This document shows positions 27,936 through 49,943 of a stretch of DNA of 64,000 bases, one piece after another (positions within the stretch are counted from its first letter, which is position 1; every line of letters starts with the position of its first letter). The position numbers were made by a program, and so were the translations under genes. The DNA lies in sequence record OR770614.1; one strand, 5' to 3'. The notes under the pieces were generated by a model. That model made no database searches. It saw only the letters and a program-made list of their open reading frames with translations, and had not been told where the DNA came from.

Positions 27936-30900
27936 CTATTCACTAGCTTTAATATCTACATTTTTTGATTTAGGATTATTTAATAAATAAACAGCTATTT
28001 GTGAGTCTTTATTAAGTGAGTAAGTTCTATTAAACAATCCATCATTATATGAAATTAATTGGTTTACTGGATCTTGTACTTTTAATTGTTCGTATTGTTC
28101 TTCTGAAAATAGTGCTATGATATTTAAAGTATCCATTTATCTTAACCTACATTTAATATATAGGATGAGACTATATCTTATGGTTTCCCATTTATATATT
28201 TAGTCGTTGAACCTTATAATTAGGATGCTGATTAGTTTCAAACTGTCCCAGCAATTAATATGATTTATTGAAGGCAATAAATCAATAAATTTTATAATTC
28301 ATTAAAATATTTCCGCTATTCCAAATTCGATAAACACCCGATTGTTTTTTAGGAAAATCTGAGTATTCCATGTTTTCATTAATGTAATTTGGAAAGTATT
28401 CTGGTATAATAGATTTTTCAAATTCATGAACTGAATAAATATTTCTTTTAAAAATTATTTTACATGTAGATTTTAATTCTTTAACATAATTAAAACCAAA
28501 ATCTTTGAAATATTTACCATCAGAATAATCTTTATTTATTATTAAATCTATTGTTTTTATATTGTTTCTTTTGAAATATTTAATTGAATTACTTAATAAT
28601 TTAAATAAACCACCATTTACAATTGTTTTATTACTAAAAGCAAATTTTTCTAATTTAACTTTATTCTTATTTATATAATTATATGACATAATTGCAATTA
28701 TTTCATCATTAATTTTTAATGAAAAATTAATATCATGAGAGGAATTTATATAGGTACTATTATTTTTATAGAAGTTTTTAGCGTCATAATCGTTAATTAT
28801 TTCAAAATTACATTCTCTAGCATTTATTTTCTTTTCTTGAAAATAATCTATAGAATACAATATCCTATTAATTATTAAATCTTTTTTAAACTCGTAATCT
28901 AATGAGTTAATAAAATATATTTCAATATCAAAATTATTTTTAAAAAAATCTTTCTTATGTTTATGATATTCTTTATTTTTCATTTTATCTGAATGATAAT
29001 AGTATCCATTAAATTCAAATCCTATTTTTTTATCTGGAAAGAATAGATCTACTTCATATATTTGATCATTAAAAGAGAATCTTTTGTTATTTAAAATAAT
29101 TCCTTTATATGATTCTTTTATATATTTTATTAATTCAATTTCTTGATTAGATTTAATATTTTTACAAAGAGGACATCTATATCCTTGTTGAAAGTCATTA
29201 ACTCTTACACTATAAATATTACCACATTTTTTATGTTTTATTGGATATTTTTCTTTATTATTGAATTTATAATTTAAATCCAACCATTCATATTCATTAC
29301 CATCTTTAGATTCAGATAATATTTTTATTAAATAATTTTCATCATCTTTATAATAATATTTACCTCTTTTTTTATTTGAACAAAAAGGACATCTTCTTTT
29401 CTTATTTCCCAAAAATAAGCGTGGTTCTACTTTATATTCATTTCCGCATATTTCATGTCTTAATAAAACTTTATCGCTACCATTTTTATTAAAACCTTCT
29501 ATATAAGTATAATCTTTATTTTCTTTTTTAATTTCTTCAAAAAAGTCTTTATCCGATATATTTTTATAATTTCTAGCTTTTTTATTCCCTTCATTTTTAA
29601 AACATTTCGGACATCTTCCTTTTCCTTCATTTAAGAAAATATTACCTTTAGATACTCTATATTCTTCACCACAAATTTTATGTTTTAAAATAAAAGGCTT
29701 TGAAGTTCCCTCATAATTGCTTATTAATTCATAATTATTATTATCTATATTTTTTATTTTGTTTATTACATCTTCTTCTGTTAATTTAGGTGGCATAAAC
29801 TCATCCTTTCAATTAATTATTAAGGAGGTTTATTTAAATTTATTTTTTATTGATAATTTTTACCATCATAGTCTGCACCCATACCAGCAAGTATATTATT
29901 ACTGATACCTACTACTGATGATTCTATATCTTGAATTATATCTTTAATTTTTAATATTTGAACTGAGCTTTCACTAATACTGGGATTTCTATTTAAAATA
30001 ACTCTCATTCCATTTTCAGTTTTATCAACTAGTTCTCTCATATATTTATATACTTTAGGATTAAATGTATCTAATGCTCTGTCTAATATTTCTTCACCTT
30101 TAGCTAAAGGAATATTTTCTGTTACATACATTAAATTTGCTAAGATAGGTTTATATACTTCTAAGAAGATGGTATAATTTAATCTAATTTCATTTAATTT
30201 AAGGTCAGGTGCTGGAACAATTACTGAACGTGCAGAGAAACCAACACGACTACCCATTAGTAATTTACGAATAGTTCCACCTTTACCTTTAATATTCTCA
30301 TTAATTACACGATCACTAATATTAATACTATCATCTTGAATTTTACTTAATAGATTTAATTTTTGTAACTCTACTGAATCATCTGTATAATGTCTATCAA
30401 GTTCTTTAATACTATTACTATGAGCAATTAATAAATTATAATCTTTATTAATTTCAGAATGTCTAAAAGTTTTAGTAGCTTTATTAACTGTAGCAGGTCT
30501 TAATTTAGGACTAAATACAGTTACATAATTTTGGAATAGTAAATCAGATAAATACCATTGTACTACTCTATTGTAATCTTTAGTTTTACGTTTTTCACGT
30601 TTAACTTCTTCTTTAAGAATTTTTAAGAAATTCTTTCTAAATTCAATTAAACCAATATAAGAGTTATGATCATCTTCAGGTTCAATTACATTACCATTTT
30701 CATCAATAGGTTTTTCAGAACTAATAATTTCTTGGAATCTTTTATTACCAATTAATTTTTTAACACGTTCATAACCTAACGGATTTAAAATATAATTATT
30801 ACCTAAATCTACAATAGCTTCATTAGTAATATTATCTGCTTCTGAATCAGGACCGAAGATTTTCTCACTGAAGATACCATCTTCAGTGAAATCACCTTTC

Positions 30901-40073: not shown

Positions 40074-40781
40074 TTATTTCTCTCCTTTAATATATAGATT
40101 TGTATAGTGATTATTTAATTTATTTCCATCTTTTCTACGTATATATGTTGCATATACTTCTTTATTTAAGAAATTTTCTAGTACTAATTTTTTAATTAAG
40201 AATAAAGGATTTTCTTTATAATTTGATATATTAACATAAGGTTCTTCACCTATAAAATTGATAGGTAATAATTTATTCGTGTTTGTATTTTTAACTCTTC
40301 CATAGCTACTTAATATAAAATTATCATAACATTTAATATTAGTCCATTCTTCATTATTTTCATCGTATATTAATTCTTTATTCAAATTATTTAAAACACC
40401 TTTAATTCTTCTAATTGATGTGTGGTTATTAATATTAAATTTATCAGATAATTGTTCTTTATCATTGTTTTTTAAAAGTATCTTAATCTCTTCTATATCT
40501 TTAATAGAATATTTTCTTATAGGTGTATATTCTAAATTATCTTTATGAACATTTAATGAATTCCCATCTTTGTAATGTAAATGTTTATAATTATTTTGAT
40601 TATCTAAAAATGTTTCAGCTACTATTCTATCAACTCTTTGTAATTTTCTACCATTCATATTAAAATGTAAATGGTTATTAACTGGAAAAATACTTACATA
40701 AATATCTTCGTATTCATTGTATATATTACCTTTTTCACTAATTATATACCTTTCATCTTTTGGGTATTGTTTCCATTTCAT
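40074..40781 (-). CDS. Tandem NUMOD4-HNH protein, likely catalytically degenerate
   Basis: Two WKxx...Y.IS..G.(I/V) plus (R/K)(I/L)V.E.FL...KDGN.LN....NL modules; the usual HNH histidines are replaced. Confidence 0.7.
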   Translation of the reverse strand: MKWKQYPKDERYIISEKGNIYNEYEDIYVSIFPVNNHLHFNMNGRKLQRVDRIVAETFLDNQNNYKHLHYKDGNSLNVHKDNLEYTPIRKYSIKDIEEIKILLKNNDKEQLSDKFNINNHTSIRRIKGVLNNLNKELIYDENNEEWTNIKCYDNFILSSYGRVKNTNTNKLLPINFIGEEPYVNISNYKENPLFLIKKLVLENFLNKEVYATYIRRKDGNKLNNHYTNLYIKGEK

Positions 40782-46908: not shown

Positions 46909-46985
46909 TTTTTATTAAATAAGGAGTAATGATGAAATTAATCACCATTACTCCAATTATATTTATTTTGAATCTTCTTTAATTT

Positions 46986-47216
46986 TTATCCTGCATCATA
47001 CGTGTTATCACCATTGATTGAAGTAGTTGGCTCTACTTTTTCCCACTCTACATCTGATTTAAATTTAGGTCGAAAATCTCCATCGCCATCTGCAAAAATT
47101 GAAACACTGCCAGACGAACCTACTATTCCAAGACATTCCATTTCGTTCAACATTGACATAAAACAATCAATCCATCTTTCTTCCATTTCAACTTCAATTG
47201 TAAATTTCTTTTTCAT
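46986..47216 (-). CDS. Small hypothetical protein with a DGDGD motif
   Basis: MEERWIDCF...FADGDGDFRPKF; AAGGAG RBS. Confidence 0.65.
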   Translation of the reverse strand: MKKKFTIEVEMEERWIDCFMSMLNEMECLGIVGSSGSVSIFADGDGDFRPKFKSDVEWEKVEPTTSINGDNTYDAG

Positions 47217-47280
47217 AATAATACTCCTTTATTAAAAATAAAAGTAATGATGAAATTAATCATCATTACTTTTATTATAT

Positions 47281-49943
47281 TTATTTTGAATCTTCTTTAA
47301 TTTCTTTAACTAGATTATTTATTTCTCTAGGTGATAAATCTTTAATATCATCTACATTTTCGAATTTTTCCATTAAGAACTCTAATTGATCTGGAGAAAG
47401 ATCCATAATTGAATGAAGATCTTCTTCTCCTGCTTTATTATAATCAATACTAACATTTAGTGGACTAAAGTAAGCATTAAGTACTTTAGTGTTATTATTT
47501 TGATATCTCTTTTCAAATGAAGTATTTAATTTAAACGGATTACCTGTATATAACTCTACTAATAGACGTTTTCTTAAGTCTTCATTATTAGAGTACATAT
47601 TAGTTAATTCATTAATAGCTTTGATAGATCCACCGATCATCATGTTAGTTGTTTCCATCTCACCGCAGTTATTCTAAATATTATTATTTAGCTAGACTAT
47701 ATCATTACCATTTAAGGTAGAATATATTTAGTCGTTGAACACTAATTAAAGTGATGCCGATTAGTTTAATACTCTTCTCAGCAATTAATATTCTTTACAT
47801 TTATACATTTCTATATAACGGAGCCTTTATTTGACTCTGAGAGGATTGTTGTTTATTCTTGATCTATAGAACTTAGAATCGGGTGTTCGTGTGGGAATAC
47901 CACTGTAATTATTAAAGTCAATTGATTTTGCACTTAATTTCCCACTAGGCTCGTGTTTTAACTTCAGGTGATACAAATCTCCAACCATAAATGTTCTATT
48001 ACTAACATCTAGTCGGTTTTTCTTAATATTGTATTTATTGAATAAGTATCTGATTTGTTCAGATTCAATATTATCAAAGAAAGGTGCTTGATGAAGTACA
48101 ATACCATTTTTAATAAAGTCTTCAATAGCTTCTTTAGTCTCTTCATTATCTAAACTATCAAATAATTTTACATAATTATCATAAGATACTTTATCTGCAT
48201 CTTTGATATATTCTAATAAATATTCTTTCTGCTTATTAACATCATCTAACTTACTAATACGATGTCTAATAACGCTTGAAATATGATTTAATTCTAATTC
48301 AACTAATGCTGAAGGATTTCCTCTATTAATAATACCCATATTATTATGAATTAAGTCTACTCTTTTCTTAATAGGGGTTTTATTATCTTTTGTGAAATCT
48401 TCTCCATCAAATTCAGTAATCATTGGCATTTCATTATCTGGAACAATCTTAGCTACTACACCTTTTCCACCGTACCTTGTGCTTATTTTTGCATTTGTGT
48501 TAATGAACTTCATATACTTTACTAAGAAGATCAGACTATATCATTACCTTCATATAAGGTAGAATATATTTAGTCGTTGAACACTATTTATAGTGATGCT
48601 GATTAATTTTATAATTCTCAGCAATTAATATTCTTTACATATAAATTTTCATTCATAAGGGACCTATTAATTTGATCCGTGCACTAAAGGTTTCTTCTCT
48701 AATACTTTAACTCTAAATACGATTTTATCAAATTGATTTCCATCATATACAAGTTTAGCATTAGGATCAATGTAGCTCTTAAATCTATTATAAGTTCTAA
48801 TTAAATCATTACTAAATTTCTTCTTGCGTACAATATCATCAGTAACAGTTACAAATGTACGATAGAAGTGTTCTAAATCTTTGATATATTTTAAGAATTG
48901 CTCTGAGTACTTTTCATTCTCTAATTTTTCAATTGATTCATTATTAAGTACATCAATATCAATAATTTTACCATGTACCTTGTATGCATTATCACTTTCA
49001 ACAATTTTAGATAACATATCATTTTTAAATTTATGAATTAATTCGTCATAGTTTAGTCGTCTTGTTGCTGTTAATACACCATCTTTAATTTCTTCTCCAA
49101 CATCTGGAAATGCTTTATAACTTTCTTCATCACCATAAATATTTAAAGGAATATCATTTGTATTTATAGTTACATTAACTACATGAACGAAATAACTTGA
49201 CATTTTCTCAGCTAATGATTCTGATACAACAATACCATCTTCCTATAGGTTATAATTAATAAAATTATACCATAGACTATATCATTACCGTTTAAGGTAG
49301 AATATATTTAGTCGTTGAACACTGTTTTTAGTGATGCTGATTAATTTAATAACATCTCAGCAATTAATATTCTTTACATACATAAATTTCTTTATGCAGG
49401 AACAAAGTTAATTTTATTCGTAAATCCTTTATCTGGTAAAAATACTGAAGTAGCGTTTGTACCATATTGGAAATTATTTGATTCTTCATCATAGTTTTGA
49501 TCTTTATAAAGTACTTCATTTTTATCAACAGTACTACCAATTTCTAAAGAATCAATTTTTTCATTTTGATATTTATTACCGAACTTCTCAGCTAAATGAT
49601 TAGCTTCTTCTCTAATAATAATATCATACTCATCATTATCTTTATACTTCACTAAATAGTATTTTACATATTTATTCTTTTCAAATATAAAAATAACTTC
49701 AAAATCTCTTTCAGCTTTCTTATAACCAGTTGAATATTTACCCACTTGATTCTCAAAACCAGTTTGAATTAATGGAGGTTCAGCTTCAGTTAATTGAATA
49801 CATTGACCTATATGTGAAGTGAACATTTGTGATCTATTACCATTAGTTCTATTAACATTAGGCATTAATAGTAGTTCCGATAAAAATTCATGACTTTTCT
49901 TATCTTCAATCTCTTGCATTCTTTGTGTTCTTTCCTTTGTCAT
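47281..49943 (-). CDS. Multisubunit RNA polymerase beta-like subunit, C-terminal part, spliced from 4 exons: 49943-49416, 49242-48675, 48491-47834, 47665-47281; 712 aa
   Basis: NGNRSQMFTSHIGQ motif; splicing restores GFTN/EDGIVVSES, HGS/KISTRYGGKGVV and NPLRV/GEME; exons sum to 2139 nt in frame. Confidence 0.92.
47666..47833 (-). mobile_element. Group I mini-intron 3 (168 nt, no ORF)
   Basis: Exon ...AGAGU / intron ends ...UAACUG; IGS GCUC; P2 with GAAA loop; P3-P9 pairings present. Confidence 0.9.
48492..48674 (-). mobile_element. Group I mini-intron 2 (183 nt, no ORF)
   Basis: Exon ...GGAU / intron ends ...CAAAUG; IGS GUCC; same core as introns 1 and 3. Confidence 0.9.
49243..49415 (-). 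mobile_element. Group I mini-intron 1 (173 nt, no ORF)
   Basis: Exon ...GAAU / intron ends ...CUAUAG; IGS GUUC; P7 GACUA/UAGUC; P3 GAAUAU/AUAUUC. Confidence 0.9.

Follow-up and report, generated by a model that had tools for sequence, protein, structure and literature searches.

Related small group I introns without open reading frames in an RNA polymerase beta gene of a Staphylococcus jumbo phage: evidence favouring spread by DNA recombination

The DNA analysed here (the window) is a 64,000-nucleotide (nt) stretch of the genome of phage vB_StaM_PB50 (PB50; record OR770614.1), in which each position equals the record position minus 62,000. The gene for the C-terminal half of the non-virion RNA polymerase (RNAP) beta subunit is annotated in this record as four separate coding sequences (CDSs), each named 'non-viral RNA polymerase beta subunit', and three introns without an open reading frame (ORF), designated I1, I2 and I3, lie within it (Table 1). 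The original prediction, made from the letters of the window, had placed near-identical intron cores at three unrelated sites on the strength of identical blocks of 25, 31 and 16 nt. All three blocks were recovered exactly, each with three occurrences in the window and all on the minus strand, and none of 100 shuffles gave three matches for the 25-nt or the 31-nt block. The sites, however, are not unrelated, since all three lie in the single RNAP beta gene. Boundaries were set so that each exon ends in T, each intron ends in G and the translation after splicing best fits a homologue without introns, and the outer limits derived independently in this way, 47666 and 49415, are the same as those first proposed. 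The spliced exons are predicted to join as ACGAAT/GAAGAT (I1), CACGGAT/CAAAAA (I2) and CAGAGT/CGGTGA (I3). In phage DC4 the orthologous gene has no intron and encodes one protein of 713 amino acids (aa) with an RNA_pol_Rpb2_6 match above cutoff; this protein matches the structure of the AR9 non-virion RNAP subunit (7S00 chain C, E=8e-143) and also bacterial beta. The insertion points fall within universal beta motifs (TN/EDGIVVSE, HGS/KISTRYGGKGV and PLRV/GEME, slashes marking the points), and the sequence predicts that removal of I1-I3 restores the catalytic motifs of the subunit.

Table 1. Exons, introns and related features of the window (window positions; slashes in motifs mark insertion points).
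Feature	Position	Strand	Details
Exon 1, non-virion RNAP beta C-terminal-half gene	49416..49943	-	ends ...ACGAAT; ORF list
Intron I1, site a, 173 nt, ORF-less	49243..49415	-	splits N/ED motif; guide GTTC 49403-49400; last base G
Exon 2	48675..49242	-	spliced translation
Intron I2, site b, 183 nt, ORF-less	48492..48674	-	splits GS/K of GSKISTRYGGKG motif; guide GTCC 48663-48660
Exon 3	47834..48491	-	RNA_pol_Rpb2_6 match weak, under curated cutoff
Intron I3, site h, 168 nt, ORF-less	47666..47833	-	splits PLRV/GEME; guide GCTC 47824-47821
Exon 4, including stop codon	47281..47665	-	ORF list, spliced translation
Fourth family core, non-virion RNAP beta-prime gene	28168-28270	-	intron at about 28137-29846; covariance model
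Homing endonuclease ORF (504 aa) in the beta-prime intron, 5' of the core	28282..29796	-	annotation; DUF4379 treble-clef zinc finger; phrog_559 HNH endonuclease, 3.8e-60

The classical core elements P, Q, R and S are visible in I1-I3 by direct reading. As had been claimed, each guide pairs with the end of its own exon (GTTC with GAAT in I1, GTCC with GGAT in I2 and GCTC with GAGT in I3), and in the resulting P1 helices (GAAU/GUUC, GGAU/GUCC and GAGU/GCUC) the final U of the 5' exon is paired with a guide G in every case. The last intron base is G in I1-I3 and in 14 other ORF-less introns mapped across the beta gene of the phages compared. The Rfam group I model gave no match to I1-I3 at its gathering score and none at E<=10, and a covariance model built from eight cores was used in its place. 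Forty copies were found with this model in the DNA searched. In their alignment, 96% of cells are paired over P3, P4, P6, P8 and the P7 pseudoknot; double-sided changes occupy 158 cells, compared with 46 in shuffles and 12-34 when partners are slid by 1-3 columns, and they are seen at 15 of the 25 core pairs. Minimum-energy folds show P1 (exon plus guide), a P2 of 7 base pairs (bp) capped by GAAA, P4-P5, P8, P7 and the P9 hairpin, with P6 recovered in the fold of I2. No ORF is present in I1-I3, where the exon frame reaches a stop within 7, 3 and 3 codons, respectively. Predicted splicing yields intact proteins of 712 or 713 aa in PB50 (712 aa), AH12, Machias, MarsHill and Madawaska, and these align across the junctions with the intron-less proteins of DC4 and PALS_2, with PDB 7S00 chain C and with bacterial beta. 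An Rfam search by the authors of the DC4 genome likewise reported no introns there. The guide pairing, terminal G, covarying core and restored frame uphold the proposal that I1-I3 are ORF-less group I introns; their identity as such is established short of a splicing assay, and self-splicing is predicted from sequence and folding models.

Within PB50, I1-I3 are 79-81% identical over their full length and 90-92% identical in the core. In the PB50 clade as a whole, the introns at sites a, b, g and h show the same pattern, with identities of 90-94% in the core and 79-85% over the full length, and of 65-78% in the 5' segment (P1-P2) and 51-66% in the 3' segment (P9). The differences are therefore not confined to P1 with its guide and P9, as had been proposed, since P2 and the loops L5, L6 and L8 differ also. 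The P2 stems of I1-I3 all have 7 bp and a GAAA loop and show compensatory differences (6 of 14 positions are changed between I1 and I3), and every difference within the three cores lies in L5, L6 or L8. For comparison, the exons of the two phage clades are 81% identical, and the MarsHill site-h intron is 79% identical both to I1 and to I3, which occupies the same site; I1-I3 are about as diverged from one another as the site-h intron is between clades. Near-identity would imply recent copying, but no near-identical full-length donor for I1 or I2 was found at another site in public phages. The overall identity of 79-81% and the diverged P2 and P9 therefore mark the paralogues as old, rather than as fresh copies with a retuned guide. 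The best-supported interpretation of these sequences is that I1-I3 are old paralogues within one sublineage, that of sites a, b, g and h, in a large family of introns carried by some Staphylococcus jumbo phages. In this respect the original prediction of one lineage at new sites was sound, as ORF-less introns of one sublineage do occupy different sites. Its use of the 31-nt block as the core of the family holds in part: the block is present three times, but about half of it is a motif found far beyond the family.

The trio is unusual in its likeness, as the other PB50 introns and the clusters on uncultivated contigs are only 70-89% alike in the core. General local duplication was considered and rejected, since only 4 of 17 PB50 introns have their nearest relative in their own gene, 3 of these 4 being in the beta gene, and since neighbours in the IMG/VR clusters are 70-83% identical. 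A possible mosaic origin of the 5' end of I2, which matches the MarsHill site-b intron at 14 of 16 nt, was dropped because the likeness is too weak.

At least 22 related mini-intron cores were found in PB50 with the covariance model. They lie in the genes for ribonucleotide reductase (RNR) alpha (1), the large terminase (3), the prohead protease region (2), non-virion RNAP beta-prime (1) and beta (3), virion RNAP beta (4) and beta-prime (4), gyrase B (1) and DNA polymerase (3); the beta-prime copy of the non-virion enzyme is the related but more diverged core that had been foreseen (Table 1). The introns are 162-183 nt long and about 25% GC. All 22 copies fall within 12 conserved genes, which together account for 12% of the genome. 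This distribution and the absence of a target-site duplication do not fit the suggested likeness to miniature inverted-repeat transposable elements; excision at the mapped junctions leaves no duplicated bases (terminal inverted repeats were not looked for). By BLAST, the family occupies 16-20 places in PB50, 26-29 in AH12, 25-29 in Machias, 30-33 in LY01, 9 in MarsHill and 11-12 in Madawaska, while four different BLAST queries gave no family match in S6, PALS_2, DC4 or SA1. The beta gene, to which the site-by-site comparison across phages applies, has seven mapped sites (a, b, c, d, e, g and h) and at least one more in LY01. Introns are found at a, b and h in PB50, at a, b, d, e, g and h in AH12, at c, d, e, g and h in Machias, at b, c and h in MarsHill and at c and h in Madawaska, and at none of the sites in DC4 and PALS_2. 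I1-I3 are 97-100% identical between PB50 and AH12. Phages with 96-98% identical exons differ in the beta-gene sites that are occupied. The exon analysis does not include LY01, for which the splice sites of the dense cluster and the 5' site of an intron near codon 545 were not placed with confidence.

In the IMG/VR database the exact 25-nt core has no match, and a looser pattern spanning R to S, which includes about half of the 31-nt block, occurs in at least 120 unrelated viral contigs. This pattern was rejected as a mark of the a/b/g/h sublineage because it is a generic group I core motif. Uncultivated jumbo-phage contigs in IMG/VR (230-400 kb, 28-30% GC) carry 3-6 compact cores of the same type within a few kb that are 70-83% alike, so that Staphylococcus phages are not alone in having dense mini-intron clusters.

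The exons of the beta gene retain signs of exchange between phages. Within 40 nt of polymorphic sites, 25 exon mismatches distinguish PB50 from Machias against 12.6 expected (p=4e-4), and 16 distinguish MarsHill from DC4 against 6.5 expected (p=6e-4). The clustered mismatches are synonymous runs, in which serine codons change family at site b and between d and e. The exon stretch from d to g in PB50, which lacks those introns, has about 11 differences from AH12 in 95 nt against a background of 3%, and this divergence therefore argues for allele replacement at the DNA level and not for a complementary DNA (cDNA) from the same genome. The presence or absence of an intron at a fixed site is thus accompanied by a signature of co-conversion of the flanking exon. 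Exchange is also visible inside the introns. A two-character patch in L5 (one indel and one substitution) is common to the site-h intron of PB50 and the site-g intron of Machias, and the alternative form of L5 is common to the site-h introns of AH12 and Machias and the site-g intron of AH12. In contrast, P6 follows the site, and all four combinations of P6 and L5 occur; therefore, neighbouring introns exchange sequence. Additionally, cores from the same site are 86% identical between clades (h with h, b with b), whereas cores from different sites within the PB50 clade are 90-94% identical, so that grouping is by clade and not by site. At site h the exon end and the guide covary, with GAGU and GCUC in PB50, AH12 and Machias and GAAU and GUUC in MarsHill and Madawaska (window 47834-47837 with guide 47821-47824; L003 3648-3651), the exon change being from Ile to Val. 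On balance, DNA recombination is favoured over a route through reverse transcriptase (RT) as the cause of both spread and homogenisation.

A separate observation concerns the intron-less site b of Machias (column 1096 of the codon alignment), where serine is encoded by AGC and not by TCA. Four adjacent bases are changed and the U needed at the 5' splice site is gone; this allele may be resistant to the intron or to an endonuclease.

About 5 of the 22 PB50 family members carry an endonuclease, and about 17 are ORF-less. The endonucleases of family members are of at least three types (HNH; HNH_3 with NUMOD; and treble-clef zinc finger, some with weak DUF2726 or DUF559 matches), and their genes are variously placed relative to the core. 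In the beta-prime intron the ORF is 5' of the core, while HNH or NUMOD-type enzymes are 3' of it in other members, which suggests that endonucleases invaded one mini-intron scaffold several times independently. An endonuclease at site d is 83-127 nt from g and h, and in LY01 another is separated from b and c by a few codons. In all, some eleven genes of PB50 are annotated as endonucleases, several of them free-standing. One of the latter (40074-40781, minus strand), which is directly downstream of the DNA ligase gene, is annotated as HNH and has a weak, sub-threshold NUMOD4 match; it is a candidate trans-acting homing enzyme. A 78-aa CDS outside the window in the PB50 record (L010 42909-43145) is also annotated as 'homing endonuclease'. 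It sits between two family introns, has a weak match to prohead protease (Peptidase_S77) and is probably a mis-named exon.

The reading considered moderately probable is that I1-I3 belong to an old paralogous sublineage whose cores are kept alike by selection and by conversion between introns, and whose distribution is due to DNA recombination with exon co-conversion. I1-I3 are minimal P1-P9 group I introns, with neither peripheral domains nor an ORF, and are predicted to be removed from the beta pre-mRNA. The likeness of the cores may come both from purifying selection acting on the ribozyme and from gene conversion in short tracts that joins neighbouring introns; the mosaic patterns suggest that conversion is anchored on the invariant core blocks. 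The P1-P2 side and the P9 side would remain site-specific because they share no homology and must fit the local exons. Between phages, introns would be gained and lost at fixed sites through DNA recombination in co-infections, with co-conversion of the flanking exon. Likely helpers are the endonuclease-bearing family members a few codons away or the free-standing endonucleases.

Several points weigh against this reading. The evidence for conversion is direct for g and h only, while for a, b and h it comes from the contrast between core and periphery, of which strong selection could be a partial cause. The loops within the cores of I1-I3 differ, and therefore no single recent tract homogenised all three. 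The clustering of exon mismatches could derive in part from adaptation of exon bases to P1 and P10 or from endonuclease resistance. No endonuclease gene was found in I1-I3 or adjoining the beta gene in PB50, and in none of the relatives was an intron with an endonuclease seen close to site a. The targets at sites a, b, g and h are all G-purine-purine-U, and GAAU and GUUC, the target and guide at site a, are also those of the MarsHill site-h intron; such common targets also fit guide-directed insertion. Finally, the site-by-site comparison rests on one gene.

An RT of the kind mentioned in the original prediction, which had invoked it as the driver of intron spread, is indeed encoded in the PB50 genome, outside the window (record 150938-152491). 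It has an intact RVT_1 domain, and its best scores are to retron RT models. Retron RTs are specific for copying their own non-coding RNA. Every one of the ten Staphylococcus jumbo phages found encodes the RT, and among them are S6, PALS_2, DC4 and SA1, which are free of the intron family; the presence of the RT thus shows no association with that of the introns, and the visible signatures of exchange are at the DNA level, neither of which is in keeping with RT-driven spread. The enzyme has an N-terminal extension of about 200 aa, and upstream of its gene is a 1.1-kb stretch without annotated genes (record 150938-153588 for the RT and this stretch together), in which the intron covariance model has no match. 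The same features of the RT were noted for MarsHill by Korn et al. (bioRxiv 10.1101/2020.12.14.422802).

Spread at the RNA level, whereby an excised intron would reverse-splice at a match to its guide, be copied by the phage RT, recombine as cDNA and have its guide retuned, is judged unlikely. Paralogous introns do lie at different sites of one transcript, which is the classic circumstantial evidence for this route, although a review finds the route itself to be without direct experimental evidence (PMC3984707). GAAU, GGAU and GAGU, and indeed the G-purine-purine-U targets of all four sublineage sites, could be paired by one GUUC guide through G-U wobbles, the exact target and guide at site a are those of the MarsHill site-h intron, and the genome supplies an RT with an intact RVT_1 domain. 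The covariation of exon end and guide at site h between clades also counts in favour of this route. The guide, however, is only 4 nt long, and selection for splicing gives the same pattern of G-purine-purine-U sites; the shared targets fit equally the survival of only those insertions that were splice-competent. Moreover, G-purine-purine-U occurs 30 times in the beta gene and about 6,900 times in the genome, and yet the 22 copies are in conserved motifs of 12 genes. The RT is found in every relative, four of which have no family intron, and belongs to a class dedicated to its own template. Retuning of the guide predicts something other than a likeness of 79-81% with diverged P2 and P9, and cDNA from the same genome would not give flanking exon tracts that differ from the intron-less allele. 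A composite scheme, in which the retron-type RT copies reverse-spliced transcripts, retrotransposition into G-purine-purine-U seeds the sites and DNA recombination then spreads and homogenises the introns, is regarded as a long shot; if true, it would provide the first natural case of group I introns moving at the RNA level.

The other two alternatives do without RT. Collaborative homing, by which each ORF-less intron would be driven by its own cognate endonuclease, encoded elsewhere and cutting the intron-less allele, is documented in other phages, and it would suit both the free-standing endonuclease genes of PB50 (e.g. 40074-40781, among the eleven or so annotated) and the location of the introns in conserved motifs with co-conversion signatures. 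It is nonetheless improbable here, as no endonuclease is beside the beta gene and some 17 ORF-less copies would require many specific enzymes. Even more doubtful is that the introns are ancient and immobile, inherited vertically at each site, with core identity maintained by purifying selection alone. Such a history agrees with the nature of the identical blocks, which are catalytic-core elements conserved over many viral contigs, with the restriction of core differences to loops, and with the 97-100% identity of I1-I3 between PB50 and AH12. But occupancy differs among phages with exons 96-98% identical, from 0 to about 30 places per genome, and flanking exon tracts change along with intron presence. 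The shared L5 patch violates a tree. Furthermore, P3, P6 and P8 covary freely in the family but are identical in I1-I3, where P2 is changed at 6 of 14 positions.

The closest precedent is in Staphylococcus phage Twort, whose orf142 contains three introns that reportedly are about 250 nt long and without ORFs. That case, however, involves another phage family and another host gene, and the PB50-type family has at least 22 copies per genome, with introns of 162-183 nt. Two of the three Twort introns are highly similar (Landthaler and Shub 1999, as given in PMC10136302). In the relatives of PB50, genes interrupted by introns in MarsHill, Madawaska and Machias were inferred from protein alignments only by Korn et al. 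(bioRxiv 10.1101/2020.12.14.422802), who also reported a retron-like RT. The introns of AR9, MarsHill, Madawaska and Machias are in the same set of genes (RNAP subunits, DNA polymerase, terminase and gyrase B), including the same beta gene, with varying exon numbers; unlike the present work, that paper is without an analysis of intron sequence, ribozyme family, ORF-less state or recombination. Related group I introns at different ribosomal DNA (rDNA) sites of fungi and lichens, for which reverse splicing has been hypothesised (Bhattacharya et al. 2005, as cited in PMC3984707), are likewise paralogues at different sites of one gene, but here the host gene is a protein-coding phage gene, an RT is encoded and the signatures seen are those of DNA recombination and co-conversion. 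Endonuclease-driven homing in phages (T4 td, nrdB and SPO1; jumbo-phage RNAP introns, PMC12908238) similarly concerns active-site motifs of essential genes, presence/absence polymorphism and co-conversion. Unlike the homing introns of T4 td, nrdB and SPO1, I1-I3 are without an endonuclease gene. As to size, the Azoarcus tRNA-Ile intron is about 205 nt. Predicted introns of Bastillevirinae start from 173 nt (PMC11878797). These small introns are likewise minimal P1-P9 structures with no large peripheral domains; in contrast to them, the PB50-type introns are 162-183 nt, about 25% GC and not matched by the Rfam group I model.

Precedents exist for group I introns in phage genes, for several similar ones in one gene and for introns in the beta gene of related phages. 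The apparent novelty is that the introns of these Staphylococcus jumbo phages belong to a single family of very small ORF-less ribozymes, that the number of copies varies between none and about thirty in phages with an exon identity of 96-98%, and that neighbouring copies exchange sequence. Standard annotation and Rfam miss these introns, and essential genes are therefore recorded as fragments. The movement of ORF-less group I introns and their arrival at new sites, a long-open question, could workably be studied in these phages, since crosses and knock-outs can draw on relatives with many introns and with none, on endonucleases that are intron-borne or free-standing, and on a phage RT.

A minor feature was noted at the end of the beta gene. 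A direct repeat of 76 nt (46910-46985 and 47228-47303), the copies of which are 86% identical and 318 nt apart, contains the final beta-gene codons and a terminator-like hairpin. It flanks a 76-aa ORF (46986-47216; phrog_10928, unknown function) that is not annotated at this place in AH12, Machias or DC4, and the arrangement resembles the insertion of a small gene cassette accompanied by duplication of the beta-gene end.

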